From NCBI RefSeq assembly GCF_000315625.1, contig NW_005434662.1, forward strand, positions 526,307 through 590,306: a stretch of 64,000 bases of DNA, written 5' to 3'. Below the pieces are notes generated by a model. That model ran no database searches. It was not told where the DNA came from and saw only the letters and a program-made list of their open reading frames with translations. Positions 107 to 41,000 of the stretch are shown here, piece after piece. The DNA is from Guillardia theta CCMP2712 (lineage: Eukaryota > Protista > Cryptophyta). Positions within the stretch are counted from its first letter, which is position 1. Each line of letters begins with the position of its first letter. A program made the translations under genes and the position numbers.

Positions 107-2909
107 ATGAGCTTCCTCCGCTGCTTCTCGTGCAAGGTCGAGCCCGACGACAGCCATGACGGGTCGGGCTCGTCGCTCCAGCGAAGCTTGGAGGAGGCGA
201 ACAAGACGATCTCACAGCTCCAGGCGGAGCTCCAGCAGGCCAAGGATCGTCTGGTCCACCACAAAGACATCAAGGAGAAGCTGCCAAGCATCTCAAGCCC
301 TACTCTTAGAGTTTCAGACCATGAGGAGGAGACTCAAGCTCCAGCCTCGTCATGGCGCCTCCCGGACGAGATCCGATCTACCCTCCAAGAGCTTTTCCAC
401 ATCTCCCACGACCCCCAGCGATCCAAGCTCCTCCACAACGACCTCCTCGTCTCTCTCGGCGTCGACGTCTCGGCCCTCATCCAGCACGCAAGCCCTGGCA
501 AGCTCTCGTACGAGGACTACGAGGTCAGAGTCGCAAGGGAGTGGGAGCTCGCTCGCAAGGCCAGCAGCCTCGCTGACATGGACATGCTCCGCGTCATGGC
601 GGAGTGCATCCCCGGTGGGAGCGTCGAGAGTCCTCTAGCGGGGCTACAGGGGATGACTGCGAGCGCTCTGTCGGCTCTATGGCAGACGGCGATAGCGGGG
701 AAACTGAAGGAGGCGCTGGGGAGGCCGGGGGAGGCTCGAGGGCGGGAGGCAGGAGTCTGTTCGACCTTGCACAATAGCAAGTACTCTCTAAACGAGGCAG
801 AGGCTACAGACAGCGAGGAGACGCGCGAAGCCGTGTACGGGAAGATCGAGGAGTACTACCGGGGGCTGATCGACCGGATTGGGCTGCCTCAGACAGGACT
901 GATGAAGGCGATGGAGGAAGAGCACTGCCGGGGCGAGGACGCAGAGGAAGGGTTTACGACGAGCAACTACGGCATCAGGACGACAGCAAAGGAAGAGTGG
1001 CTGAACGTCACAGACCCGGAGAGGAGGCAGAGGCTGTCTGAAGGAAAGCGGATCATCCGAGGGATAGAGGAGCTGAGGGAGCATGCGATGACGATCAAGG
1101 CGGACCTGCGGGAGGAGGAGCTGATCGCGCTGCAGCTCTACACAGGTAAGCAGGAGAGAGCGAGGCAGGAAGTCTTTGTTGGATGAGACAGGTACCACAG
1201 GGCCGTTGTACTACAAGTATAACTCCATCCTCCGAGCCCCAGACCAGGTGGCCAACAAGTACACGACGACCCTGCACTGCATGGTCAGCGGACTGGTCAA
1301 GCTGGCTCGTCACACGCCTCTGACGGAGGATCGGCGAGTGTGGAGGGGGCTGAAGGGGCTGAAGCTGCCGAAGAGCTTCCTCGAGGAGGACAAGCTCGGA
1401 GTGTCGGGAGGGGTCGAGTACGGGCTGCTGAGCACGACGACAGACGTGGGGACGGCGATCCAGTACGCGGAGGAGGGTGCAGAGCCGATCGTGCTGGAGA
1501 TCAGCTGCGGGGCGATCGACCGGGGGGCGAGCTTGGCGTTCTTGTCTCAGTATCCCGGGGAGGAGGAGATCTTATATCCTCCGCTGTCTTACCTGGAGGT
1601 GCTGAAGAAGCCGCGTCAAGAGGTGATGGAGGGGAAGCGAGTGAAGGTGCTGCAGCTGAGAATCAACGCGAACGTGATGAGCTCGACGATCGAGGACATG
1701 CTGGGGAAGAGGAAGCAGCTGTATGCGGGGCTGATGGAGAACATCGCGAGGGAGGTAGAGCGAGACCTGAGGGAGTGGGAGCCGGAGATCCAGGAGCGAC
1801 TGAAGAGTGCAGTTGCTGATAGGTGTAACCGGCGTGATAGGGTGCTGTTGGAATCGATTAAGGAAGAATGCCGCACGCTTGTCGAGGCGAGTAGACGGAG
1901 GGAGGCAGAGTGGTACAACGAGGACTCGAGATACAAGGAGGCAATCGAGCTGTCCAACTCGATGAAGGACATGGCGATCAACAAGCTCAGACATTGGATC
2001 GAAGACACTCAAGGAGACTGGAAATGCCCAGCTTTGACAGGCGACTCGATGAAGTCAGTGTACTGGAAGACGATGGCTGGTCTGATGTTCAAGATTGCCT
2101 CCCTGACTCCAGCAGACAGTGGCAGACAAGAGCTGTGCAAGCGACTGTGCGGGATGTACGGCTTGTCGATCGCAAGCGAAGAAGAGCAGGCGGAGCCGCC
2201 GACAGTCACAGCAGTCGTACGAGGGCAGGGAGAGCTGATCCCGCTACTGAAGGCGGCAGGATGCGACATGGATGGGCGGATAGAGGACGGGAGGACAGGG
2301 CTGCATGTAGCGGCGATGCTGGGGAGGGCGGGAAGCGTGAGGGAGCTGATAGAAGCAGGAGCGGAGGTAGGAGCGAGAGACGGGGAGGGGAGGACATGCA
2401 TTCACTGGGCGGGAAAGTATGGACATGTGGAGGTCCTGAAGAGGTTGAGGGAGATGTGTGGGGTAGAGAAACTGAGAGATTATGTAAGGGAGAAGACGAA
2501 TGACGGCTGGACATGCACGCATTTGGCGAGTGTTGGAGGGCAGGTGGAGACACTTCGGTACCTTGCAGAGACATGCGGGAAGGTGCTGCTGAGCGAGAAG
2601 ACGAATGACGGCTGTACGTATGATGGCTGGACATGCGCGCATTTGGCATGTCAACGAGGACAGGTAGAGGTACTGCGGTACCTTGCAGAGACATGCGGGA
2701 AGGAGCTGCTGAGAGAGAAGACGAATGACGGCAGGACTTGCGCACATGTGGCAAGTCTAGGAGGGCAGGTGGAAGTACTGCGGTACCTTGCAGAGACATG
2801 CGGGGAGGAGCTGCTGAGAGAAAAGGACAATTTCGGAAAGACGTGTGCTGATGAGGCAAGTGAACACGAACCTGTTGTCGAGTATCTTCAAGGTATGGGG
2901 ATCGAGTAA
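107..2909 (+). CDS. Mono-ADP-ribosyltransferase (R-S-E / cholera-toxin-like clade) with N-terminal coiled coil and C-terminal ankyrin repeats; 2 exons, intron 1146..1200
   Basis: ORFs 107..1186 and 1176..2909 join through a GT..AG intron (1146..1200) to give LYTGPLYYKYNSILR. ART motifs: VWRG (catalytic R), LLSTT, YPGEEEILY (E-x-E). Ankyrin repeats: GRTGLHVAA, GRTCIHWAG, GWTCTHLAS and others. Confidence 0.88.
2490..2840 (+). repeat. Near-identical 105-nt tandem coding repeats (ankyrin units)
   Basis: Units start at 2490, 2595, 2715 and 2820 (partial) and share cggtaccttgcagagacatgcggg. Unit 2 carries a 15-nt in-frame duplication. Confidence 0.9.
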
Positions 2910-4053
2910 TCTCAGACTGATTTTATAAGTACAACTGCGAAAACAAATATGTCCTACCATCGTGGCATTGCTTTATGCTTGGGCTCAGGTAAAATGTGCA
3001 CCGCAGGATCCAAAGGGTCCAAAACCTCGAACGAACGAGAAAGTGGGGATTACTTTCGCTGGCCACGATTAGCATTAAATCACAAGGAGTTGGAGGCAGG
3101 TTCTACATGCCACTTCTGCTACCTATGGGACGATGGATATATCTCCTCATACCGCACGATAATCAAATTATTCACACAATAGACACAATCGACACAATTC
3201 CATACCCACCACTACGGAGATGGCTGAAGAGGTTCCGAGAAGAACTCGAGAGGCACACAGGATGCAGCTGGAAGATGGAAAGCAAATTTAGAACTATGAT
3301 TTCAGGGCTCCACCTCATCTTTACCCGAGCAGCTCACGTGCTGTGGGAAAAGATCTCGGGAGAGGAGCAGGTATCTGCTCTGAAACAAGGTGGATGGAGG
3401 ACATGTCAAGCTGCACACTTATGATAGATAGAATGCTAGTATCGATCTGCATAAAGATAGGAGAAATAGATGTAAGAGAAGCACTAACAGTCATGAAGGA
3501 ATGGGGGAATGTACCAAGGAATATCATACTGCGACCTTGTGCGACAGTTGATCACGGTTCTTGAGAGCATCGACTCATTGAAAAACAATATCACAGCAGG
3601 TATCAAAGTGACAACAAAACTGATTCATCTTGTTCCTAGAAGACATTACACGACGTAGACTGTGATGTGCTCATACACAGGTAGGTACCGAGTCTCCGAA
3701 ACACTAAATTGTCATGATTTTTTTAATGACTGAAAAAGAAGGCAAACTACAAATCCGCCTCAACAAAATACTAGGAAAGGGAGGAGTGGAACTGGAGTAG
3801 CGGTTTCCAGAGCGGTTTCACCTGCGAGAGGGCTGTATGAGGGCTTGATCAGCACTTTCCTGGGGCGGGTCGGTTGAGTTTTATTTAGCCCCCGATGCCG
3901 TCGGGGATCTGAAGCAGAAGGTTGCGATGGCGTGGGAAGCGAAGAGAAACCTTGTGAGGGGACGAGCCTCAAGTCAAGTAGTCATAGTAGTTGAAGCATG
4001 CCTGCAACGAGGGACGGGCAGGTAGGATGACCTCTACTTGACCTTCTCCTCCT

Positions 4054-4074
4054 CCCCCCCCCCCCCCCCCCCCC
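4054..4074. repeat. poly-C tract (21 nt) upstream of the OGT-like gene
   Basis: Direct read of the homopolymer. Confidence 0.95.
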
Positions 4075-4124
4075 GCGCAAGCACACGGCTTGCTACCACG
4101 TTGTCTTTGTCCAGCAGGCAGGCG

Positions 4125-7100
4125 ATGAGCGCTGCCAGACTTTCAAGCTACAATCGTACCGTCCTCTTGGTCGCACTTACGCTTTGGATTTCTAATCCTG
4201 CGAATGCTAGGAGGAAGAAGACTAGTCAAGATGTCCATCCGTGCGATTCTTTCGAATCCTTCCAGGAGGCGATGGAAGCAGCAAACAATCTTGCAGCTTC
4301 GAGGAGGACGAGAGAGGAGAGCAGATGCCTGCAGAGAGCTATTCAGCTGTCTCCGCGCCACCCTGAGCCCTTCGCTCGCCTGGCCGAGATCGCGGTCACT
4401 GACGGCCAACACCTCCAGGCTCGTGAGTATGTTGAGCAAGCACAGCGACTGTCACCAACCTCATCCAAGGTGCTGTCGATATCGGCTGCCATCTACTACT
4501 CCCTTGGTGACCTGCAGAGATCAGTGGCCGACTACGAGGCCGCCATGCTGCAACAGGATGGCCTGACGATGCACAACTTCAACAACCTGGGGATCTCGTA
4601 CGCGGCCAGCAACCAGCACGCTTCTGCGGTGCGATCGTACAAGTCCGCCCTGCGCCTCTGGACCCCTGAGTCGGGTATGATGACGACAAGCATTCTTCTG
4701 AACCTTGGGAACACGTTCGTCGACCTGAGAAGATTCTCTGAGGCCTTTGCCTCCTACCGGCGCATCCTTCACCTAGATCCCTCGTACGCCATCGCCCATT
4801 ACTCACTTGCACGTGCTCTTGATCGTGCAGGAAATCCCCTCGAAGCTCTCTCAGTCTACAGACAAGCGACGATGGCGGACCCGTACCTTCCTCACGCCTA
4901 CAGCAACATGGGCATCACCTTGTTGAATCAGAATCGACCCAATGACGCTGTCAAGGTGCTGGAGTATGCCGTCCGGTTGCGACCGATCTCTGCTGAGTTC
5001 GACAACTTGGGGGATGCATATGGTGACAGTACGAGGTACGAGGACGCGATCGCAACCTATCAGAAGGCGATAGACGTGGCTCCCAACAGGATCTACCCCA
5101 AGTCCTACTACAGTCAGCTGCACTACCTGATCCACACTTGCAACTTCGACCGTCTGAGGGAGGCCTGCGAGAACCTTGAAAACACCTTGAGCTGGGAGCT
5201 GCAGACAGGGCAGGAATCCGGAATGACTCCGGTGGAGGCTCTTGTGCTGATCGGAACTTACACCGACCACAGCTTGTTTCTTCGCGTTGCCCGGAATTTC
5301 GCGACCCGTTCACTTGCCCGGGTGAAACAGGCAGGTTGGGTTCCCTTCAGCAAGCACGCAAGGATGAAACCTGGGAAGAGGCTCAGGATCGGATACATCA
5401 GTGGAGGGTTTCGACATCATCCGGATGGAAAGAACATGCAAGGAGTGTTTGAGCAGCACGACAGGTCGAGGTTCGAAGTTTTCTGCTTCAGTTTGAAGAG
5501 AGATCATGGCACTCCCGTTCAGAGGAAGCTTCAATCGACGTGTGAGCACTTCCTGGACTACACAGACCTAGACAACTATCATGCAGCTTCACAGGTCAAC
5601 CAGCTTGGCATCCACGTCCTCTTCGACGTGAATGGGTACACCGGCGAAGGCGTGCGGCAGCAGAGGAACATTATCCTCGCCTTGTCCCCAGCAAAGCTCC
5701 AGGTGAACTTCTTGGCTTGGGTCGCAAGCAGCGGCGCTTCTTTTATCCAGGTTCCCTCAGTTGGCTCAGGATGGTTGATGTGACTATGTGGGCAGTACTT
5801 GGTCTCCGATAAGGTTGCGAGTCCACCTGAGTTCGTTCAAGACTACTCGGAGAAACTTCTGCTATGGCCACACTGTTACTTCCCCTCCGACCTCCGACAA
5901 TCAGGGGGAGAGATCCGCCTGCCCAAGGTTTTAGGCCTGTCCAAGGTTGATATTGAGAGGTTCTAATCGTCCATGTCCAGGGGAGGGCGCTGAACAAGAG
6001 GAGGTCTGACCTGGGGCTCCCTCGTGACGGTCCTCTGTTGTCAGGGTTCAACCAGTTGTGGAAGATAGACAAGGCGTGTAACTCAATCCTTTTTCCCATC
6101 GGAGGAGCTGATGTCTTGATGTAGAGACTGTTCCTGACTTGGATGGACATCTTACGACGAACGACTGAGGTGAAGGCAACATTCGTTATCGCTGCGTGTT
6201 TGCAACGTAACGTCAACGCAGCATCACACAACCCTCTGGCTTCCTCTGTTTCCAGATGTGGCCAAACCGCAGCTGATGCGAATAGCGAGAGCAAAGTTGG
6301 GGAAGGTGGAACGCAACTGGGCAGTCTACACACGTTGTAATGCTGACGTCAGAATGCAACGACGAGGATCGTATGGACGAATCTGTTTGACGAGAGCGAA
6401 CATCTGCAAGTGAAGAGCCTTGCAACCATGCAGGTCCTGACTTCTCCTCCTCCCTCTCTCCATCCTGCTGCTCGTCTGATCATTGGACAGCTCGACACCT
6501 TCCTCTACTGCGGTCACACGTCGGGCGCCGACATTCTCTGGGCTGGCGTACCAACCGTGACGCTTCCTGGAATCATGCAGGTCCTTCCTGTTTCTCAGTG
6601 ACCGTCACCTTTCTTGTGACTTGATCTAGTCGGCGCGAGTCGGCGCGAGTCTCCTCAAGGGCCTCAGCCTGCACGGCCACCTGGTCGCCAGGTGCGGTTG
6701 CAGGCTCACGCGACTTTACATAACTCAGTCCGGAGCAGGACGGCAGAGGACTATGCGGATGTTGTAGTGAGAGCGATCCGAAGCCTGCAAGCCAGCGGCG
6801 AGTCGAAGTGGCTGAGTGAGAGAAGGAGAGAATGTGCGGGAGTGACCTGAAGTGGCGGATGCGATGATACAATCAGGTTCGGTGAGGGCGAAACTTGCAA
6901 CGGAGAAGCAATCTGGTTCGTTATTTGATGTCTCAAAGTGAGATGAGCCTTGCTGGGTCCATTCTCTCATGATGCAAATGTTACAGGTGGGTAAAGTCCA
7001 TGGAGTCAGCAGTCTCTATGGCCTGGGATATCGACTCTTTCAGGTTCTTTGTGTCTATGTTTTGGATGTCAATCGCGATTGACGTGCATAAATGTAATCG

Positions 7101-9520: not shown

Positions 9521-12500
9521 TTACACACAAGAGACGTCATTGCAAGCGCGAGCCGCCTCTCACTGCCAGCATGGCTCTCGTCGATATACCTTACCCTAGA
9601 ATGCTGCATGGCCCCTGCGGCCTCAAGGACTTGGCTCCAAGGACTTCTCCAGCTTCAGCTTTGCTAGCCTGAGAGCCCCCAAACGTCTCAGCGGGAGTGC
9701 TGAAGAGCGTCCCCACTCCCCACTCACCTCTCCTGCAGGCTCAGGAACGAAGACCGTTTGTGCAGCTCGGAACCTGTGACGTGGGTGAGGATGAGAAAGT
9801 TCGCGGCATCGCACGCGCACCAGGGGTTTCAACATGAGCGCTGGGAGGAGGAGACTCCATCATCTCGCCGCTGGTGTTTTCTTCCCTAGGGCTATGGAGA
9901 CTTTAGGCAGAATCTATAGAGGAAGAGTAGGACAGGAGGAGAGGGGATAGGAGGATCGGGCGAGAGGAGGAGAGGAGGAGAGCAAGAAAAGTGGCAAGGA
10001 AAGTTACCTCTGATTCGCAAGCAGCGAACGGAGCTGGTGAAACTTTTGGATCAACGGCGAAGTTGCGGAGGGACCTTTGAAGCACGTCAAGTGCTTCTTC
10101 TCCTCTGCAGCGCTGGTCTCCATCGACGTTTCGTCCTGCGAACTGTCATCCTGTTGCTCGCAACATGAGCCATGCTTGCTCTCCACTCGTGCGTGTATCT
10201 TTGCCAGGCCTCTCTTGACGTGGACTCGGAAGTCTGCTGGGCGATCCGACATGTAGTCATCCAGATCAAAGTCGTCGTTCTCCTGGATATAGTCGTGCAA
10301 GCTCTCGAAGCCGGATCGTGCAACAGAGGAGTCCTTGCTGACTATCTGGTCAAATATGCTGTGCACCCTTGAAAACGATTCGGAGCTTTCCTTGGTCATC
10401 TTTGCGCCTTGTTGTTTGAACACCAGCTCAAGGTAAGAGCAAAGGATGGGATTGCTGTGAACAGGTATCAAAGTCAGATGATTCTTGATAGCTGTCCCTT
10501 TCAGCTTGACCAACTCGTTCAAAATCATCTTCAACAGACGCAGGGGCCTGAATTCCTTCCCTTTGTATTGGGACGGCGGGTGTGCAGTCAAGAACTTGTG
10601 TATGTCTCTCAGAAGAACGTCGATGTTCATGTCGTCCAGGAAAGTTGAAATTCTCCTAGTCATTTCCAACAGACACCGCAAGACACCATCAATGAAATCA
10701 AGAGTTGGTTCCCGAAGGCCCGACAAAGGAGCTTGATCGTAAAGAAAGTTGATCAGGATGGTAAAAACTGCATTCGGCCGCGCGAAGTGAAGCACATCCA
10801 CGACCAGCTCATTCATAGAGCGAACAACCTGCTCCATCATCTCGTCGTCGTGGAGATGCGGATCATGCAAGGTCCATAACAATTCTTCCATGAGACGACT
10901 TAAGACCCTGTCGCTCACAGTCTTGGCCGCTGTGGGGACGCTTGACAACAAGTAGTGAAGGGAGCGAAGGGCATCTGTGACTCCTTTCCGTGTATCCGTA
11001 TCATCCCAAGTCCCCCCAGTTGCAATACTCTCACCGACAAGTGTGATAAGAGTATCAACAATGATGTCCACATGAGCTAGGACTTCGTCCGCGTCCCCTC
11101 TTGTCTTGATGGAGTCGATGATGTCACATAGTTGAAGAACAGCTGCTGCTTGCTCTCGAGCTGTTGAGCTCGCACGAATGTCGTCGATCAATGAGCAGAT
11201 CATATTGTGCATGTTTTGATCACAAAACAATGATTTCTCTGCTGATTCGAAGCGCCTTTCCCCATGAGCCGATCTGGAAGGCTTGAACGGGTCCACACTG
11301 ATCAAGTCTACCATCGGCTTGTGCACAGAAACATTCTTGTCGCCATGCAAGGAATGAGATTTCATTTCCATGGAGGACCTAACCGCAAAGCCATGTTCCT
11401 TCACCGTCAGTGGCGATTCTGAATCGCTTTCATGACGGGGCAATCTCTCATGAGGGTAATTGGAAGGGGAGGGTTCTTTCATCGACCCCCGGCAGAGTTT
11501 CATTTTGTTCAGTTTTGTGTCTATCAGGTCCTTGTCCTTGATCTCCAACTTACTCAGGTGCTTCCAGACCTTTTCACCGATCATGCTGTATACCGCAATA
11601 ATGAACTCGATGGCCGAATTTCTAACTGACGCATCTCTCTCCGAAACAAAGGTACCTATAGTCGATATCACCTTGCCCGGATTACTCGTGACCTCGTCCA
11701 ATCCTTTTTCTTGAACCATGTAGCAGGCTACAGAAAGACATTCTGCCTTGGCCCGTTGATTTCGGGTGTGGAGCAAAGTATCCAGAAGGAGATTGAAGAA
11801 CTTGCTCGCTGGATACAGCGCAACAAGGATCAGAAGAGCTTCTCGGATCTGCTTGCGGACGTTCTCGTTGTTGGCTCCGACTTCTTCCATCAGGCAAGGC
11901 AAGCACATTTGCGCTTCATAGTCAGATAGGCAGTAGTTTTCCTTGGTCAAGAAATCAAACAGATTCCTCAACAAGTCCAAAACTGCCAACACAACAATTG
12001 TGTTGTTTCCTTTGCCAACCAGACGCAAGGAGCAAAATTTCAGGATCATATCCAGATTGTCAATCACCTCTTCAGCTTCAATTTGAAATGAATTCCCCAT
12101 AATTCTCATGCCTTCCACTTGCTTTTTGAATTCCTTAGAGAAAAGTTTCGAGTGTATTTCAGAATCTATACATTGAAACATCTGCTCGCTCATGGCTTGT
12201 ACCAAACTTTCGACCTCTTTGGCGTTGTCAAGTATCCATTTGAATTTCCCATGTCGCTTTTCTCTCAGGTCCTTTTGATTGGTTCGCCGAAAAATCCTTT
12301 GATTCAAGTTTGAAGGTGCAGATGCGGCAGATCCTTGGGAGGATGAAATGTTCTCCATAGCGTCAGGCTTCAGAATACTTTTTCTTACCATGGATGTGGC
12401 AGTTGAAGGCCTGCTCAACGAAAGACTCTTACGAGAATTCCGTGTTTCGCTGTCTTTCTCTCTGAACTTCGCGCTTGAGATGTTCCTTGACAACAGCGAG

Positions 12501-15500
12501 CTCCGCACGTTCCCATCTCTTCTGTCCTGTATGGGCGATCTCATGGATGAAGAAAGTTGAGGCGAGGGAGGCCTATGGGCGCTCAAAACCCTTCCGTTGG
12601 AGTCTTGAGGGTCAGGGCTACTTGGCGACGATCGATGGGGCGGTCTGTCCTGCAAGTGATGTCCTGCCGCATGACTGGAAGAGCCCTCTTCGTTTGCTTC
12701 TTGCGCTGCCCTGCTACAAACAGCTTGAAGGGTTTCTGCTAGAGCAGGCTTCTGATCTCTGATGATCTTCTCTAACGTTTCTGTGCCGTTCAAAGAAATG
12801 ATGGGAACCAGGCATCTCTCCGCTGCTGCCCGAATCTGCATGGATTAGAGATGCCTTAGGATATTCAACGGACTGAAGGGAAAGAGCCATACCTCAGCGT
12901 TCCTGTGTTGCAAGCTATCTATAATCGGTGGGAGAAGGCTAGACAGATCTAAGTCAGTCTTCTTATCCATGTTCTGAAGAAAATCAGCCATCCATCTGTC
13001 ATGGATGTCAGTATCATGCTTGAGTTCAGCCTAATGATGTTCAGCTCATACCTCGTTGCATCCTCACGACCGGCGGGAGCTTCTACTGAAAGAGCGAAAT
13101 GCGCATGACGAACAATGATATCGGGAGAAAGGTTCTTTGACAGCGTCTTCATGCATTCAAGAACCGCATCTCTTACGACCTTCTTATTGTCTCCTATGAG
13201 GGGAAACAGGGAGGGCAGCACAATCTTGTTCACTTTCTCCATGTTGGGCCCAATCGCTTCCGTCAACTGGCTGAGCAACGAGATCGACAGCATGACAATA
13301 TTCTTATTGCTATCTCGCAATCTTGCCTTGAGCTGTGTCCAGAATTCTCCACCATTGACGTCCACGTATGGTCCTTGATGGCCCAGTGGTTTCGCTTTCT
13401 TCAAAGCGTCTTCAATGGCAATCAGAGAACTGTGGCGATCCTTCCAGTTGCTGTTCGAGAGCCCTTCCAACGATTTATGGACAATGGTTGCAAGCGGTGT
13501 TGCCTTGAATGATGCGTCATCAGTGAGCAATTCTTTCTCCTTGCCCGAAGCCTTGCAGACACGTCGAGGGGCTGCTGTTGTTGACATGGGCGCTTCTTGC
13601 AATTCAGGAATGGAGCTGAACGCCTGCATTGAGTAAGTTCGTATGACATGTAGCGCATGCAGTTACAGTTCACCTCATCTATCACTGTAAGTAAAGCTGG
13701 CTTTACATCCGTCAAGAAGTTTCGGATGTCAGAACCAAGATGGATTCGCATGGTCTTAAGTATTTCGATTGAGCTCTTTTTCACCGTTGGATTTGGCGAG
13801 GTCAGCCTGAAAATTACTGGTGTATGAGGAACGATTTGGCGCAACAAGGAGGGATTTACATGTTCTTGATGAATCCCAAGAGCATCTTTGGATCCAAAAC
13901 AGAGAATCCGAATTCCAAACAATATACTTGACAGAAGGCAAGAGCTTCGGAATGCACCTTCAGCATGTTTCAGTGTTTCACGATCCACATCAATGGCATG
14001 CGCTTCGAACCTTTGGATTCTTGTGTTGACTGACTTGATCGATCACAGCATCCAGAACTTGCTTTGGATTGATCGCCTCTCCAAAATTTAAGAGACAGTC
14101 GGTCACAACTTGCTTGAGCTTATGGCAAATCTCGTCAATTCCAATAGCATAACAGGAGGAATAGATACCTTGGCGTCAGAAAATTTGTCAACAAGTACCG
14201 GGATGTAGCTTTCGATGAGGTTCATGCTTTGCAACGAACGCTGCATTGAGACATGGTTACGATTGATCATAGATTTCCATCAAAAATATTTCTTCAAACA
14301 GAGCGTAAATGTCCATTGTGCATACAGGAATTGATATGATCAGTGCAAAAGAAAGGAAACCAGTCGGGTCCCTGTAATCCTTACCTTCAAGAACAGATCT
14401 GCAGCAATCTGAAAGACTTTAGCCAAGACCTATGCACAAGCATCATGATTGCCGTCTTCTCACCAGGAGACTTACCTGCATGTTGGTTTCTTTGCGATCG
14501 ATGAACATTGCAGTCAGTAGCCTCAATAATGCCTGGTTTGATGAAGCATAAGTCCGAAACAGAATCCTAGGACACTCACCTGAGCAATGTTCTCTTGGCC
14601 CATAAACTCCTCTATCTTGGTGACGTTCTCGAGTTCTGTGAGAGCTTCAAGCTTATCCTTCCATGCCCCAGTTTCCAGTCGCTCGAGCATGTTGGGATAC
14701 TTGGTGTTGATTGCTTCTTTAGCAAAACTCTCTAACTCCTCATCTTTCAGGGCTGTGACTGACGTGCTGCTTGCTGTATCCTTCGCTTTTTTGACCGCAT
14801 TCGAGCTTTCTCGAGCTTTACTTCCCAATGGTGTAGCTTCGACTTTGGTCGCCTCCCTTCCATGACCTTTCGCAGGCGATAGCTTCGGACTAGATTTTGC
14901 TCTTCCAATCACTTCCTTCGGGTTGCCTTCACTGCAGTCACACGAAGAAAGCAAACCTTAATTTCAGCCAACCTGCATCATCTTCCAGCGTGAGCAATCT
15001 CGGTTTACTTCTCGTCTTGACGCTCGGAGAATTCCTCGCTGGTGAGGAAGGAACAGATTTGGTTCGCTGACTTGTTGAGCTTTCAGCAGTCTCTTCATTC
15101 TGCCTGGACTCCAGGCGTGCTCTCAGCTTCTCGTCCAATATCTCCATTGGAATATGAAGATTCTCTACAGCAGCTGCAGACGCGAGACACGACATTGAGG
15201 CCTTTGCTGCATCTCGAACCTCGGATGCACTGCATTCGATCACTGCTCAACCGCGAATGAGAGGTAGCAAACAATTACTTGTCATTCGTTGCTTTTCCAA
15301 TGACTTCAACCAAATGCTTCACCCAGAGGCTCAAATCCTGCCAAGTACGTCAGAAGCATGTTCCGAAACGGCCCATCACTCAATGAACAGGAAACGAGGG
15401 ATCTGAATTGATCCATACATCAGCTTTTCTGCGCTCTACCAACACTTGAAGCAATTTCACCGCCTCAATCTTAGCCTGTTGCCCATGTAAATTCAAGAGC

Positions 15501-17546: not shown

Positions 17547-18935
17547 TCAATTCCTAGGTTTGCCTTTCGCACCAACCATTACATCATCGCTGTCATAGTC
17601 TTCATTTGTCTCTGCTGATTCCGTAGGATCCATATCAGACAATTCTCGGCGACGCAACGCCTGTTCGAAGCAAAAGGCCTCATCGACGTATTTGTGCAGA
17701 GCAAGCAACGACTACCTTTGACAGAAACGTGAAGAGCTTGGCGTTCCCCTCTGCTAGCTGAGACCTTGCTAAGTCTAAAGCTGTCTTGCCCCACTCATCG
17801 GGCCTCGTCACATCTGTGTGAACCACGAGTCACGTCGTCCACCCACATCCCTCACCGCATCACCTGCTCCATGATCGATGAGCACCCGCGCGGCCTCGAG
17901 TTGCTCACACCAGACTGCCTCATGGAGAGGCGTGTACTTGTAGCCTGCTGCTCCTGCACAGCCATGAGCACGCATCCAGCACTTGGAGGTCCATGGGATA
18001 CCTCTCTCTGCACCATGCACATCAGCTCCTGATCTGATCAAGACCCGGATCGTCTCGATGTGCCCGCCGGCGGCTGCTCTGTGCAAGGCAGTCCATTGCA
18101 TCTTGTCGTGGTGGTTCACATCTGCACCGAGTTGAAGGAGTTTGATCACAGTCTTCACGCGGCCATCAGCGGCAGCATACTGCAAAGGAGTGTAGCCAAA
18201 GTTGTTGCTGGCATTAACCAGCCAAGAGGCATTCTTTGCGATCGTCTCTACTGTATGTGTGTGTCCATTGTATGCCGCATAGTGAAGTATGGAGCTCCTG
18301 CGCTTGTCAGTAAAGTTCATGTCGGCCCCAAGGACTGCCAACAAATCGACAGCATCCTTGTGTCCACATTCGGCTGCTTTCAAGATCGCACATTGATGTT
18401 CCTCGTTGATGAAGTTTACATCAGCCCCCATCTGTACAAACTTCCTGATCTTCTCTAATTTGCCCTTCTTCGCGGCTCGAATCAGTCTTAGATTGGCTTC
18501 ATTTTCTCTGTCCAAACTGAAGCCAAGACACGCACCTCCACCCGTAACTCGCAGGCAGAAGTCTTTTCGCATGGCCTCCAAGTGTTTCAATCTTGTTTCG
18601 AATTGAGCTGCCGAAACAAGACCCCTGTCCAGGGATCCATCCCGAGTCACCGAGAGGTTCCTTGCTCCAAAACAGATGTCCGGTCCAAAATACGATCTGC
18701 TAACGAATGCACAAGGTAGTTGGTATGAATTGTCGCGGCAAAGCGAAGAAACCCTTGCTTTGTGCTCTCCCTCCGTCAGGCAAGCATAGAATCTCGCAAA
18801 ATTGAAAGTACCGGACAACCCCTTGCAGGTGGTGGCTGTCTTTCCAGGTATCATCAGAATTGAAAACAGCAGAAACCATTGAGGGGCCCGTAGCTTCAAA
18901 ACTGAGAATGGAATCATAAGACAAGGACTTGTCAT
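17547..18935 (-). CDS. Ankyrin repeat protein with N-terminal hydrophobic (signal-like) segment
   Basis: Ankyrin repeats GYTPLQYAA, WTALHRAA, YTPLHEAV, plus a later exon EWGKTALDLA. N-terminal PQWFLLFSILMIPG. Confidence 0.8.
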
Positions 18936-27932: not shown

Positions 27933-28988
27933 TCATTCACTTCCTGAGAGCTGCTCCTGCTGCTCCCTGCTTGGCTCGGCAAGCACGACCTTACAATGAG
28001 GCGTCAGCAAAAGCATCAGGGCCATAGAAGTGGACCACACCTCAAAAAAGTCTTCTGCAGTTTCCGTGTTTGCCGATTCGTATGTGCCATATCCACATGC
28101 CCCTCGATTCGGTGCTCGAAACAAGCAACCTGTGCTGTATGAGAGACAGCCTCCCACCACCTCTGAAGTCCTCAATCCTCCACTCACCGCTAACCCATCG
28201 ATCTCGCTACCAAAGCACGCTCTTTTTACGCATCCTTCTGGATACAAACACCTTCGATGGCGCAGATCCAGCATATCAGCGGTCTTGTGCTGAGCACACC
28301 ACATTCTTGCATCCCCATCCACACACCCTTTGGCCCGATACCCGAAGGAAGGATTCTTGGTACAAGAGGGGAAAGCACACTTTGCGTTCTTAACATCAAC
28401 ACAATCGTCTGGCCGATGATGAGAGCAATACAAGGCCACTCCTGATTCTCGCTTCCCGAACACCGGGCGCTTTTTGCATCCTTTCGAGATGCATGTCGGG
28501 TTCACCACGTCCACAAACGTGGCAGGCTTGTGCTGCAAGCAAAACATCGCACACCTGCCAGGGGCGCCCACGGGACCGAAGGTAGCCTTCTTGGCGCAGG
28601 TCTGACACTTCCCACGGAGAGAGGTCAAGGAGATGGTATCAGAATTCCCAGCGCATCTGACAGCTTTGACATGCTCTAGACACAAGAACGCTTTCCACCT
28701 TCGCTCCCCCTCAGCCCCGACGACGCCATACGAGATATCTGGTGATTTGCACAAACAACATGCCCTCAGGATGACGTGCCTATCATCAAAATCCCCAGAA
28801 TTGGTGTCTGGCTGCAGCATCGAATCCCCACCGTCGCTGGATATGGTTGGCTGTGTGCGATTGCAACGTTGGGGAGCAGGATCAACCTGTAGGAGATCTA
28901 CCTTTGGGATTGAGATCTCATTGATTGCCGATTGAGCTATCCACAAGTACGTGAGGAGATGGAGCAAGACCCTCATTGAAGCAGACAT
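27933..28988 (-). CDS. EsV-1-7-type cysteine-rich repeat protein with signal peptide; 3' part spliced
   Basis: Repeated C..C.K...FG......C..H.....D units (CQTCAKKATFG..FCLQHK, CISKGCKKRPVFG..YCSHHR, CAFPSCTKNPSFG..WCAQHK). N-terminus MRVLLHLLTYLWIAQSA. Confidence 0.82.
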   Translation of the reverse strand: MSASMRVLLHLLTYLWIAQSAINEISIPKVDLLQVDPAPQRCNRTQPTISSDGGDSMLQPDTNSGDFDDRHVILRACCLCKSPDISYGVVGAEGERRWKAFLCLEHVKAVRCAGNSDTISLTSLRGKCQTCAKKATFGPVGAPGRCAMFCLQHKPATFVDVVNPTCISKGCKKRPVFGKRESGVALYCSHHRPDDCVDVKNAKCAFPSCTKNPSFGYRAKGCVDGDARMWCAQHKTADMLDLRHRRCLYPEGCVKRACFGSEIDGLAVSGGLRTSEVVGGCLSYSTGCLFRAPNRGACGYGTYESANTETAEDFFEVWSTSMALMLLLTPHCKVVLAEPSREQQEQLSGSE

Positions 28989-29687: not shown

Positions 29688-31952
29688 TTATCTGCTCATA
29701 CCGTCACTCTGCAAGCCCGACGAGCAAAGAACGCAACTTACCCCTGTGTCCCATACGACCATGGCGGTACTTCCATGGTGGACCTGAGTGACGGTTCCTG
29801 GACCCTGGCACGGGATCCCGTTGGATACCCGGACGCGCTGCCCAAACCTTCCCATCAGGTCCCTCCCAATGACCCGGGGATCGTCGAGCTCAGCGGAGTT
29901 CTCGAACCCGCTGCTGTGTTGCCTCTTCTCGAGCTCCTCAAACATCTTGTCGGCAAGTTCGTGGAAGTCTTGACTGCTGATCCTGGGGATCTCTCGGGAG
30001 GATTGCAGGATCCTCTCCGGATCGAGTTCCATCGATTCCATGTGGGTCAGGATGAAGAGCAGGCCCTCGAAGTCCGCGTCTAGCAGCTTAGCGGAGATGG
30101 ACTTGAGGATGGCGATCGAGATGGACACCAGCGATCCCACGCCCTCGAAGAAGAGGATGTCCCACAGGTGGCACACTGTGTCGAACCTCAAGAAGGACGT
30201 GAATAGCGTCATCCACCATTCGAGCAGAAAAAGCTTCAGGTCGATCTTGACCCTGCTTATGTGCGCGTACACCTTGGGGAGGTGCTTGGCAAGGAAGACT
30301 TTGAAGGCCATCAGGTAGCTGTGGATGCGGCCCATGTTCATGTGAAACAAGTTCTGAAACAGCTGATTGTCGAGGATGTTGATGAACGACACAAAGGTCT
30401 CCTCCAAGCTTGTGTGCAGCAGCAGCACACCCGCTATTGACCCCATCCCCTGAACGTAGCCCATCCCGGGGTCATAGAGGACGAATGCTTCGAGGACCCG
30501 CCTGAGATTTTCTGTGTAGCTGCCTCCTTCGCTGAAGATTTTCAACCTCGGGAGAGTTCGAATGAGGTCGAGACGCACTTGGATGAAATTTGTCAGGATG
30601 GAATCAGACTGGGATTGAGCGGTATCGTCGTTCTCCGTCGTTCGAGCTCCAGTTTCTCCCGCAGACTGGTGCTTGCCGTCAAGTAGCATTGACTCCATGG
30701 CTTTCTTGTCTTGTAGTGCTATGGCCGAGTGCAGATCTCTTGCTCTAGCATCGTAGGTGCAGAAATCGTTGATGTCTATTCCCTTCTTGTTGCCGATCGC
30801 AACCATCCACGCAGTTCCCCGGAGACTTGGGGGAATGCCCTGGAAAAGAACTTTATGGACAGTCCTTTGCACCTTGTATTCCTCCAGAGCGTTCATGATC
30901 TCCTGCTCTCTGCTTTGAACTCTCTTCGCTATCAAGTCTCGATACCTCTCCAAGACATTGTGGATTGATTTCAAATCCAGATCGTTGCAGAAATGAATAT
31001 TCTGTTCGCTGGACAAGAATTTCAGATCCGGGTTGTGGTAAGATTGCCTGTTTTCCTCAACTTTTGAAACTGCCTGCGACAAGAATTCCACAAAGAGGCT
31101 CAAATCCGCTGGCCCATGATATGACTCTGTACAGATTTTTAGAGGGTGGTAAAGCACAACGAGCCTCGACTCGTGGAAGTCTATAGGAGGGACTGACTTG
31201 ACCAGTCGCTTCAACACCTTGCACTGGTTGATGTCGACGAAGGTGAATCTCAGCGCACCAAAGAAGATGCGAGAGAGAATGAGAAACCAGTCAGGCGGAT
31301 CGCTGCGGGTCATGAACATCAAGACGGTCGGGAACTGGATGTGCTTCCTCGTGAAGAGGTAGCTGAAATCGACTTCCTTGTCTATCCTCTCGACGAAGCC
31401 ATCCTTGCTGAGGTACCCCAGGATCTCGTTGTCCAGAGAGTGGATCGAGATGAAGATTGCCAGCGGGAGAAACTTGGGCTTCCCTCGATAGGGAATGATC
31501 ACGGTGTCGGAGCCCTTCCCCAGCAGCAGGATGATATCAGGTTTCTCTCTGCAGTTTTGCTCGTTCTTGATGGTGAGCTTCGAGTAGAGATGGTCTTGCC
31601 AGACAGACTTCGCATGTACTTCGCTGTCTTTGAGAATGCCGAAGAAAACCCTCCTGCGGAATGCACGGGCAGCACGGGAGAACTGCTGGCGCGGAAAGTT
31701 GGTCCACGGGAACATGAGCAGTCTCGGGAGCCGAGAGTTCTTCAAGTAAAGGTCATTCGTTCCGAACGACTCGTCCCTCCAGTCTGCACTCAGAAAGTCC
31801 TCGAAGTCACAATCATGCACAACCCCATCCGCAGTAGTGGCCGTGCTGCCTGCTTCCGGCGAACATGCCGAATCCCAAGACTCGTTCAGGTCGTCATGAG
31901 CTTGATCTACCACCGTCTCCATCCTCTCAAGGAGCCGCCAACGTGAACTCAC
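29688..31952 (-). CDS. TBC-domain Rab GTPase-activating protein with N-terminal thioredoxin-like region
   Basis: FQGIPPSLRGTAW, VRLDLIRT (IxxDxxR) and GYVQGM (YxQ) catalytic motifs in a 754-aa ORF. Confidence 0.88.
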   Translation of the reverse strand: MSSRWRLLERMETVVDQAHDDLNESWDSACSPEAGSTATTADGVVHDCDFEDFLSADWRDESFGTNDLYLKNSRLPRLLMFPWTNFPRQQFSRAARAFRRRVFFGILKDSEVHAKSVWQDHLYSKLTIKNEQNCREKPDIILLLGKGSDTVIIPYRGKPKFLPLAIFISIHSLDNEILGYLSKDGFVERIDKEVDFSYLFTRKHIQFPTVLMFMTRSDPPDWFLILSRIFFGALRFTFVDINQCKVLKRLVKSVPPIDFHESRLVVLYHPLKICTESYHGPADLSLFVEFLSQAVSKVEENRQSYHNPDLKFLSSEQNIHFCNDLDLKSIHNVLERYRDLIAKRVQSREQEIMNALEEYKVQRTVHKVLFQGIPPSLRGTAWMVAIGNKKGIDINDFCTYDARARDLHSAIALQDKKAMESMLLDGKHQSAGETGARTTENDDTAQSQSDSILTNFIQVRLDLIRTLPRLKIFSEGGSYTENLRRVLEAFVLYDPGMGYVQGMGSIAGVLLLHTSLEETFVSFINILDNQLFQNLFHMNMGRIHSYLMAFKVFLAKHLPKVYAHISRVKIDLKLFLLEWWMTLFTSFLRFDTVCHLWDILFFEGVGSLVSISIAILKSISAKLLDADFEGLLFILTHMESMELDPERILQSSREIPRISSQDFHELADKMFEELEKRQHSSGFENSAELDDPRVIGRDLMGRFGQRVRVSNGIPCQGPGTVTQVHHGSTAMVVWDTGVSCVLCSSGLQSDGMSR

Positions 31953-38376: not shown

Positions 38377-41000
38377 CTAGGCCGAGCTAGTGCGACTCCC
38401 GACGGTAGGCGGCTTAGGGCGAAGGAGGATCTCAGGAGCAACTCGCACTGAGCCTCGGTAATTCTCAAAGCTGAGCTCGAGTTCAAGTGCGATGACGTCA
38501 TTGACCCCTTGCTTGAGGAAGCTTGCCGGCACATACAGGTCGTGCTGAGGGCCCATCTCCTCCCAGTACATCCCTAGGTTGATGCCGTTGAGCCAGAGGT
38601 ACCCCTGAGCGCATCACCGTCAGCTGCGGCGAGGACGGAAGGACGTGGTAACACTGCCACTGGAACACCGGGAGAGTCGGGATGGGAGAATCTCACCTTG
38701 CCGAGCTTACGGGTTGAGATGAAGGTGTCACCAATCTGATCTGGGCGCAATTTGAACTCGCCCATCAGAAACAAGGGAGCTCGCTCGCGTTCTTTGCCGC
38801 CGGCGCCTCCTGGCAGCGAGAGAGACTTCAAGTCAGGTTATCAGGCTGCACGAGGACAAGGTACTTGATCTGAGGGCGGCGCGCAGAGCTTCCAGCGGGA
38901 AAGGGTCCAACACGAGGGGGAGGTTGAGCCAATCGCCTTCGATTTCATCATCGCCGAAGAACACTGGTCCAAACAAGCCCTTGGAATCTGCAAAACGATC
39001 AAGATGCTTATGAGAGCGTTGGAGTTGCTGGTGCTCCGGTAAGCAGCGGCAAGGCTACCTGTGAGGAACTGTCCGTAGTTGACCCTTCCGAGGTTCTCTA
39101 CCAGGATGTCGAGCTGCTTGATGCCTTGGTCAGGCCCCACGAGGAGCGAGGCAACACTCGGGCCCTCCTCGTGCCGCGACATGACGGCAGCAAACTCGCG
39201 ATCCATGAAGACCTGAGCTCTGTCCTTGACTCTCCCGACGGTCAGATTCTTCTCTCCGTTCTCCCTGCTGTTCAAGGAGATCCCAGGGCGGCTGTAGAGG
39301 ACAAATCCGTAGTCGGCATTGATCAGCTCAAAGGGGAGAGGCCTCTGGGATGAGACTGCAATGCCGGAGACCTTGTCCAGGACATCCCAAAGGGACGATT
39401 TCCACGGCAGCTGCACGGTGCCCAGGTCCACAAGAGGGATTGCAGGCGGCTCAGGAGGAAGAGGCGTTCGAGAAAAGTTCCGCAGCAGAGACTGGAGCGC
39501 TTCAAACTTGTCCAGGTTGTCCGAGCCCACCCCATGCTCCCCACACTCAGATATCGGAGATGAGTAGTCGTAGGATGTGATGATGGACGCATACTGATAC
39601 GGACGTGAGTTGTCTAGAATGTTTGCTCCGCTCCAGAAACCGAAATTTGTCCCTCCGTGCACCATGTACATACTGAAAGAGAACCCTTGCTCTATCATGG
39701 TCCTGAGTGTAGTGACCGCTGCCCTTGTAGAGGTACGGGAGACGTTCGCTTGACCCCAAACGCTGTACCAACCTGGATAGTATTCTGAGCAGAACAGGGG
39801 TGCTAAACCTTTTGGGTTCATCTCCAGCTGAGCAAGCATAGCCTCTGTCACGTTGCCACTGGGGCCGAAGTCGCCAGCGCTGAGGACGACACTTCCATTC
39901 AACGATCCTCGTCGCATGCTGTTGATGTCCCCGAAGTCTGTCGTGTACAAGATGACCTGGAGCACGTGGTCACTGCTTGCAAGACAACTGGAGTGTGGAG
40001 CGAAGACCTGCGGTCCAAGAAGGCTTCTGCAGAGGTGGATCAGATGATTGAGATACTTTCGATCAGCTGCGATCTTCGAGACATCTCCATAGCTTCCGAA
40101 CTCGTTTTCAATCTGAATCATGATGACTGGACCACCGTGCTGGTATAGAAATCTCCGAAACCTGAAAGATCTTCAGCTGAACCTCGTCTTCTAGGTTGAG
40201 AAGGCACTTCGCCTGGGGAGAAGCATCTTCCACCAAATCTCCACCTCCTGGATGTAATTTGGCTCGTAGGTCCGCAGGACGAGCTCTTGATTCTTCAAGA
40301 GCCAAGAAGGGAATCCTCCGAATTCCCATTCAGCACCTGGGAAACAAAACAGCATCAGCAATGCTCCTCTCTCTCAATAGATGCGTCCGACATATGAAAG
40401 GGCCGGGTCTCAGGAGTACAAGCAAACCCAGCTCGTGGGCCAAGGCCATGAACTCTTCAACCTAGGAGAAAACTTCTCAAAATCTTCTACTTGATCGCCA
40501 TACTGTTGGCTGCTATACATTGTGTGACCCCGAGAATCTGTACTGTCGCTTCTTACTCTCGTGAAAATTCCAAGCAACCTAAAGTTCACGCACTCATGAA
40601 ACCTACTCACCAGAGAAATATCATCACATAAGTCTGGATCGCATTAAAGCCCAAGGCCTTGACTCGCTGCATTCGATCGCGCCAGTACCTGCACACGGAT
40701 CGTCATTTCGAATCGTTACATTGCAATGTTCCCCATTACGCTTTTGGGATTCGAAAGTAATGCAGTTCCCCAGCAAATATCTGGAATGGCTGACCATCTT
40801 TGTAAAACTTGTTATCCTTGATGGAAAAGCTCCTCTTCTGGTCTCCTGCCAGCTCCTAGGATGAAACTCAGATGGCAGATAGTCACTTTGTAGAAGCTCA
40901 CTGCATGGATCTCCCTGGACACAAGAGGGAAGCCATCGGCATGAAAATTGAAGATGCAAATCGCCACGAAAAACGTGACCAAGGGGCGCAATACAGCCAT
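38377..41000 (-). CDS. Beta-galactosidase, glycoside hydrolase family 35, with signal peptide; multi-exon
   Basis: IQIENEFGSYG (acid/base), SEYYPGW (nucleophile), YMVHGGTNFG, TSYDYSSPISE, LDILVENLGRVNYG, GPQHDLYVP. Confidence 0.93.

Follow-up and report, generated by a model that had tools for sequence, protein, structure and literature searches.

To our knowledge, the known arginine-specific ADP-ribosyltransferases (ARTs) of the R-S-E clade come from bacteria, where they are toxins or effectors, from phages, or from vertebrates, where they are ecto-enzymes. One of them, the Pseudomonas syringae type III effector HopU1, acts inside eukaryotic cells and modifies protein arginine residues there. 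In the tankyrases (PARP5a/b), which belong to the H-Y-E (PARP) clade and form polymers, an N-terminal ankyrin array recruits substrates. The vertebrate ARTCs (ART1-5) are single-domain ecto-enzymes which are anchored by glycosylphosphatidylinositol or secreted, and ART1 and ART5 are tabulated as R-S-E enzymes with an E-x-E motif (PMC7955679). Here we describe a gene of the cryptophyte Guillardia theta CCMP2712, which is located at positions 107 to 2909 on the plus strand of a stretch of 64,000 nucleotides (nt) (assembly GCF_000315625.1, contig NW_005434662.1, positions 526,307 to 590,306; this whole stretch is called the window below). Its product of approximately 914 amino acids (aa) contains an R-S-E ART domain, which is followed by a helical domain and an ankyrin array. 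In our opinion it is probably a cytosolic mono-ART, most likely with specificity for arginine, in which the ankyrin array serves to bind targets or regulators.

The protein resembles each of the described systems in part. HopU1 (PDB 3u0j) is its best solved relative, with approximately 150 positions matched. However, HopU1 is an injected, single-domain bacterial effector of 270 aa without the N-region, the helical domain and the ankyrin array described below, and the similarity is remote and confined to the core. In contrast to the bacterial ART toxins (HopU1, C2/C3 and Tre1 type), the gene in the window is not of bacterial type, since it has a spliceosomal intron and eukaryotic neighbours encoding TOG, RabGAP and GT41-TPR proteins. 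The algal family to which it belongs and the vertebrate ARTCs have the Pfam family PF01129 in common, but the window protein has neither a signal peptide nor a hydrophobic C-terminus, and it harbours large modules of intracellular type. Like tankyrase, it joins an ankyrin array to an ADP-ribosylating domain; its triad, however, is R-S-E and its ankyrin array is C-terminal. The combination of a NAD+-using effector with a repeat array is also reminiscent of nucleotide-binding leucine-rich-repeat receptors (NLRs) and other signal transduction ATPases with numerous domains (STAND), for example TIR-NLRs, with the difference that here a helical domain and no NTPase is found between the ART and the repeats.

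The ART domain corresponds to positions 1019 to 1682. These bounds are approximate and were derived from the Pfam match of the closest paralogue, GUITHDRAFT_119904 (P0001), and from the strands in the structure model; the domain is interrupted by an intron, and the end of exon 1 holds its first helices. The exon 1 and exon 2 products were searched and modelled separately. The codon for the catalytic arginine (1344-1346) encodes R48 of exon 2, which belongs to a VWRG motif (nt 1338-1349, exon-2 aa 46-49). The S-T-T motif is encoded at 1431-1439 (exon-2 S77-T79; the longer STT(T) spans 1431-1442), and the E-x-E motif, here EEE, at 1560-1568 (exon-2 E120-E122), where it is preceded by an invariant Q-Y-P. 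In an alignment with 61 relatives the catalytic columns are kept almost without exception. The R, G, S and Q positions are conserved in all 61, the three positions of the S-T-T motif are S in 61/61, T in 56/61 and T or S in 61/61, and in E-x-E the first glutamate is present in 59 and the catalytic one in 60 of the 61 sequences. The AlphaFold2 (AF2) model of exon 2 places R48 on a strand (aa 45-50), S77-T79 between the next strand and a helix, and has the strand 122-124 begin with E122.

The family matches are more telling than those of the single exons. P0001 is above the curated cut-offs of two families of the Pfam clan ADP-ribosyl, with 31.0 bits for PF01129 (ART) and 25.7 bits for PF03496 (ADPrib_exo_Tox) over aa 274-456, and of the 25 relatives found in the first round, 22 match PF01129 and 19 match PF03496. 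A profile built from relatives without ankyrin repeats matched HopU1 in the PDB with E 5.2e-9. When the piece from the window was included, the profile matched HopU1 (1.3e-8), Tre1 (1.1e-4) and Certhrax (2.5e-3), and more weakly Lmo0066, Vis, XopAI and SpvB; exon 2 alone weakly matches Tre1, HopU1 and Certhrax. In the PDB the family profiles thus match only R-S-E ART toxins and effectors, with R, STT and ExE aligned. In the profile match the exon-2 VWRG is aligned to YRG of HopU1, S77-T78-T79 to its STT and E120-E122 to its E-E-E. No PARP family was detected in Pfam scans of the window exons or of the relatives, NCBIfam gave no match in the ART part, and the 64-kb window contains no second ART copy. 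Since the Pfam and profile matches of the family identify the domain, it is, as judged from its sequence, an R-S-E ART whose NAD+-binding and catalytic residues are all present, and its closest likeness appears to be to HopU1 and the ARTC/C2-C3 toxin group. The ART domain with R, S-T-T and E-E-E had already been recognized in the initial annotation, which was made from the letters of the window alone.

The gene is split in two exons. The open reading frames (ORFs) 107-1186 and 1176-2909 on the plus strand are in different frames, in-frame stops are present 5' of position 107, and without splicing the exon-1 frame would end at the stop at 1184-1186. Exon 1 (107-1145, plus strand) starts with the ATG at 107 and comprises 346 codons and the first base of a Gly codon. 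It is followed by a phase-1 spliceosomal intron of 55 nt (1146-1200) with GT-AG borders (GTAAG...CAG), which cuts through the ART domain (a point missing from that annotation), and by exon 2 (1201-2909) with 568 codons and the stop codon TAA (2907-2909). Splicing of 1145 to 1201 yields a Y-T-G-P junction, which is conserved in at least 90% of the sequences in the alignment of 61 relatives and is uninterrupted in proteins known from transcriptomes of Hanusia, Hemiselmis and Rhodomonas. With an alternative in-frame acceptor at 1190-1191 the product would be three residues longer, but the alignment of the family speaks for the acceptor at 1199-1200. P0001 carries an intron at the identical site, and thus the intron is common to relatives.

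Most of exon 1 lies outside the ART domain. Its residues 21-58 (167-280, plus strand) form one long amphipathic helix of coiled-coil type, with a predicted local distance difference test score (pLDDT) of 80-91 in the AF2 model and a heptad register in which 9 of the 12 a/d positions are hydrophobic, in agreement with the coiled coil proposed initially. A match of exon 1 to Mis12 (E 0.025) was dismissed as a cross-match between coiled coils. Further downstream and directly upstream of the ART core we found a conserved, family-specific N-region of 215 aa (exon-1 aa 86-300, 362-1006, plus strand), which consists of a helical part and a conserved motif block and was absent from the initial annotation. 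It is 72-77% identical to the corresponding region of P0001. No Pfam, PADLOC or NCBIfam family was matched by exon 1. Its AF2 model reached a pLDDT of 71.8 and a predicted template modelling score of 0.37, and comparison of this model to the PDB with Foldseek gave no significant fold match (best E 1.4). The idea that aa 86-205 represent a degenerate pair of EF-hands is unsupported, the EF-hand-like Foldseek rows being weak with a probability of at most 0.15. The N-terminus of the protein is hydrophilic, and 19-aa Kyte-Doolittle windows over both exon products (maximal means 1.18 and 1.36) revealed no signal peptide and no membrane segment, as the initial annotation had stated. Two cysteines are found among the first nine residues (107-135 in the window), and P0014 and P0004 also begin with Cys-containing N-termini. 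It is possible, albeit speculative, that S-acylation of such cysteines tethers the protein to a membrane.

The ART is separated from the ankyrin array by an all-helical domain (1689-2162, plus strand; exon-2 aa 163-320), which is confidently folded in the AF2 model (pLDDT >90). It matched no Pfam family, is 73% identical in P0001 and 29-36% identical in other cryptophyte relatives. What had been taken for a helical linker is thus a conserved domain. The ankyrin array (2199-2894, plus strand; exon-2 aa 333-564) consists of five full repeats flanked by an N-cap and a C-cap. It is strongly supported by Pfam (Ank_2, E 2.3e-43), by a model pLDDT of 90-98 and by Foldseek, which matched ankyrin domains of the PDB with a TM-score of up to 0.80 on the target. 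The array as such had been predicted, but its size was given as about 5-6 repeats, while we counted seven, of which four are 35-39 aa long. Tandem Repeats Finder detected tandem units of 105 nt (35 aa) at 2496-2865 on the plus strand; ankyrin units 4 to 6 are such 35-aa units and are 81-86% alike at the DNA level. In addition, a tandem duplication of 15 nt at 2601-2629 is in frame and makes the loop between units 4 and 5 longer by five residues.

The window gene is one paralogue of a cryptophyte multigene family with a haptophyte relative. Word searches revealed approximately 65 distinct relatives, and chance resemblance can be excluded because they match with E values down to 6.6e-86. The named relatives are from the cryptophytes Guillardia, Hanusia, Hemiselmis, Baffinella and Rhodomonas and from one haptophyte, Prymnesium, and the remaining ones are from environmental contigs. 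At least six paralogues exist in Hanusia phi, three in Baffinella and at least two in G. theta. This is not the pattern of a single-copy housekeeping orthologue. Transcriptomes of Hanusia, Hemiselmis, Rhodomonas and Guillardia cultures contain relatives, and the family is therefore expressed. When 185,579 prokaryotic genomes were scanned with family patterns, a method that finds fairly close relatives only, no relative was confirmed.

The closest paralogue, P0001 (844 aa), carries the UniRef name 'NAD(P)(+)--arginine ADP-ribosyltransferase', which is an automatic annotation. It shows the same order of coiled coil, N-region, ART, helical domain and ankyrin repeats, and is 64-65% identical overall (64% for exon 1; tblastn against locus L001, scaffold JH993125.1). 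Conservation is highest in the ART core (79%), while the ankyrin array is 64% identical and the N-terminus only 38% alike. P0001 differs by its shorter ankyrin array, and repeat number thus varies between paralogues; it is also encoded at a separate locus with different neighbours and is either a paralogue or a diverged orthologue. No experimental work on P0001 was found in the literature searched.

Across the family the conserved N-motif block and the ART core travel together, while the partners of the core vary. They include ankyrin repeats, ankyrin repeats with SPRY, leucine-rich repeats (LRR), HEAT repeats, EF-hands with or without ankyrin repeats, and Myb, and further a 2-oxoglutarate-Fe(II) oxygenase and decapeptide repeats. 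Relatives with the same ART and exchanged modules had been predicted from the window sequence, and such relatives were indeed found. Two environmental proteins from JGI sample 3300076284, P0100 (L002:1-2637) and P0101, start with an ART domain of the same clade which is followed by NPHP3_N/NACHT, a TANC1-like winged helix and a WD40-like tail, and are thus built like an NLR with an ART as effector. Their R, STT, Q and E-x-E are intact, but they are distant, with 31-32% identity in the ART and E values of approximately 1e-11. In P0017 and P0019 a second copy of the N-motif is followed by a new L-Y-T-G start, corresponding to tandem ART modules in one protein. Ahead of its N-region and ART, P0009 has a hydrophobic N-terminal segment, and some members of the family may therefore be anchored in a membrane.

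Which function could such a protein have? According to the reading favoured here, the ART domain would bind NAD+ and transfer ADP-ribose to intracellular protein targets, most likely to arginine. The ankyrin array would bind targets or regulators, and the N-region and the helical domain may also be part of this binding module, while the coiled coil at the N-terminus could serve to form oligomers. The family as a whole keeps one catalytic core, consisting of the N-motif and the ART, and combines it with different interaction or regulatory modules. Catalytic activity is predicted from the conserved residues. Specificity for arginine is likely because the E-x-E motif is present and the nearest known enzymes modify arginine in proteins; together with a protein substrate, a cytosolic location and the role of the ankyrin array it belongs to the presumed properties of the protein.

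Several observations weigh against this reading. Exon 2 alone remains below the Pfam cut-offs, both for PF03496 (E 5.7e-4, 19.7 bits, cut-off 23.4) and for PF01129 (E 0.14, 11.9 bits, cut-off 22.3); we attribute these weak scores to the intron, which cuts the ART domain. The order of the secondary structure elements in the exon-2 model fits the split beta-sandwich of an ART fold, but the pLDDT of this part is moderate (57-87). Foldseek with the whole exon-2 model returned ankyrin proteins only and was thus uninformative on the ART fold. Further, enzymes with E-x-E are not all specific for arginine or for proteins; some act on nucleic acids, and in others hydrolysis of NAD+ predominates. Finally, a further exon may exist upstream of the window start.

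A role in defence is possible, and this is the alternative which fares best. It was suggested from the start, by analogy to immune receptors consisting of an effector and repeats. The ankyrin array would sense a viral or bacterial ligand and free the ART, which would then modify targets of the host or the invader or deplete NAD+, leading to defence or cell death. The idea draws on the exchangeable repeat modules (ankyrin, LRR, HEAT, ankyrin with SPRY), on the lineage-specific sets of paralogues, on the strictly kept catalytic set, on the recent tandem duplication within the ankyrin array together with the variable repeat number, and on the occurrence of the same ART clade upstream of NPHP3_N/NACHT and a WD40-like tail in P0100 and P0101. 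However, these NACHT relatives are distant, and an NTPase switch is missing from the window protein (no NTPase family was found by Pfam in either exon) and from the cryptophyte ankyrin subfamily. The pairwise ratio of nonsynonymous to synonymous substitutions (dN/dS) among the three most similar ankyrin units is 0.47-0.63 and not >1, thus giving no sign of positive selection in this small sample. Fusions to EF-hands and Myb fit signalling linked to Ca2+ or transcription as well, and the transcripts of the relatives come from ordinary cultures. The PADLOC and NCBIfam matches of exon 2 were rejected as evidence for defence, as they are confined to the ankyrin part and are far below the cut-offs. 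The proposed parallel to immune receptors is thus supported in part, namely by the exchanged modules and the two distant ART-NACHT relatives, but the window protein has no STAND NTPase between the effector and the repeats, and we consider an immune sensor-effector unlikely. It is likewise doubtful that the ART clade in general is an effector of eukaryotic innate immunity, which would be wired to ankyrin, LRR, HEAT or SPRY modules either directly or via NACHT, and of which the window protein would be a one-chain sensor-effector without a switch.

It is still less likely that the enzyme is active without being a protein-arginine transferase. It would then be mainly a NAD+ glycohydrolase or a modifier of nucleic acids or small molecules, and the ankyrin array would serve for localisation only. 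Some of the R-S-E enzymes that carry E-x-E or Q-x-E are NADases or modify DNA or RNA, which speaks for this possibility. In the R-S-E clade the region of the Q-Y-P-x-E-x-E loop selects the acceptor, and this loop is invariant in the family, which speaks against it. An ART toxin targeting RNA has been described (PMC12340436) and would be a precedent; the identity to HopU1 is low and the matches cover the core only. However, the best matches in PDB and Pfam are protein-arginine transferases, namely HopU1, Tre1, Certhrax, Vis and PF01129 ('NAD:arginine ART').

We also considered that the gene encodes a catalytically silent scaffold (pseudoenzyme) or is a decaying copy, since the window's own product is not among the matches of the word searches. 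Three other ORFs in the window are also without a record of the exact product. Given two long frames free of stops, a canonical intron, intact and family-invariant catalytic residues, and an ART core which is 79% identical to that of the paralogue, this seems very improbable. That the protein is an exported toxin against prey, competitors or grazers is scarcely credible: its nearest solved relatives are indeed secreted bacterial toxins and effectors, but it lacks both a signal peptide and a membrane segment, its large architecture with coiled coil and ankyrin repeats is of intracellular type, and some relatives bear EF-hands.

The surroundings of the gene were also inspected. In the first 4000 nt of the window the plus strand is strongly purine-rich, with a GC skew of +0.16 to +0.25 and an AT skew of approximately +0.2, because the encoded sequence is rich in Glu, Gly, Arg and Lys. 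This leads to many spurious overlapping ORFs, and we regard the overlapping and antisense ORFs within 107-2909, for example 2206-2859 on the minus strand, as by-products of the purine-rich and repetitive coding strand. The next gene downstream (4038-5783, plus strand; the ORF is a part of the gene) codes for a protein in which TPR repeats precede a family-41 glycosyltransferase domain of the O-GlcNAc transferase/SPINDLY type. Genes on the minus strand encode a TOG-domain protein (10004-12841), a RabGAP-TBC protein (29688-31952) and a fragment of a GH35 beta-galactosidase (38841-40121). A separate ankyrin-repeat ORF (17808-18935, minus strand; Ank_2 E 8.4e-32) is approximately 25% identical to the array of the ART gene. 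The ORF at 27933-28988 (minus strand) contains cysteine-rich motifs of the EsV-1-7 type (PF19114, E 1.1e-25), a repeat which was first named from a brown-algal virus.

The catalytic fold is already known, and so is the name, since UniRef automatically designates relatives as 'arginine ADP-ribosyltransferase'. In the literature searched we found no paper on this algal ART family and no experimental study of an intracellular eukaryotic R-S-E branch. New with respect to this literature is the intracellular cryptophyte ART branch, with its own N-terminal extension and a wide range of fusions including NLR-like ones. Provided that these proteins are active, a major group of marine algae would possess enzymes which write ADP-ribosylation on arginine inside the cell, and their fusion partners would provide a map of how ART activity is aimed or controlled. 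Should the immune interpretation hold true, the family would represent an ART-based counterpart of the TIR-type immune receptors which consume NAD+.

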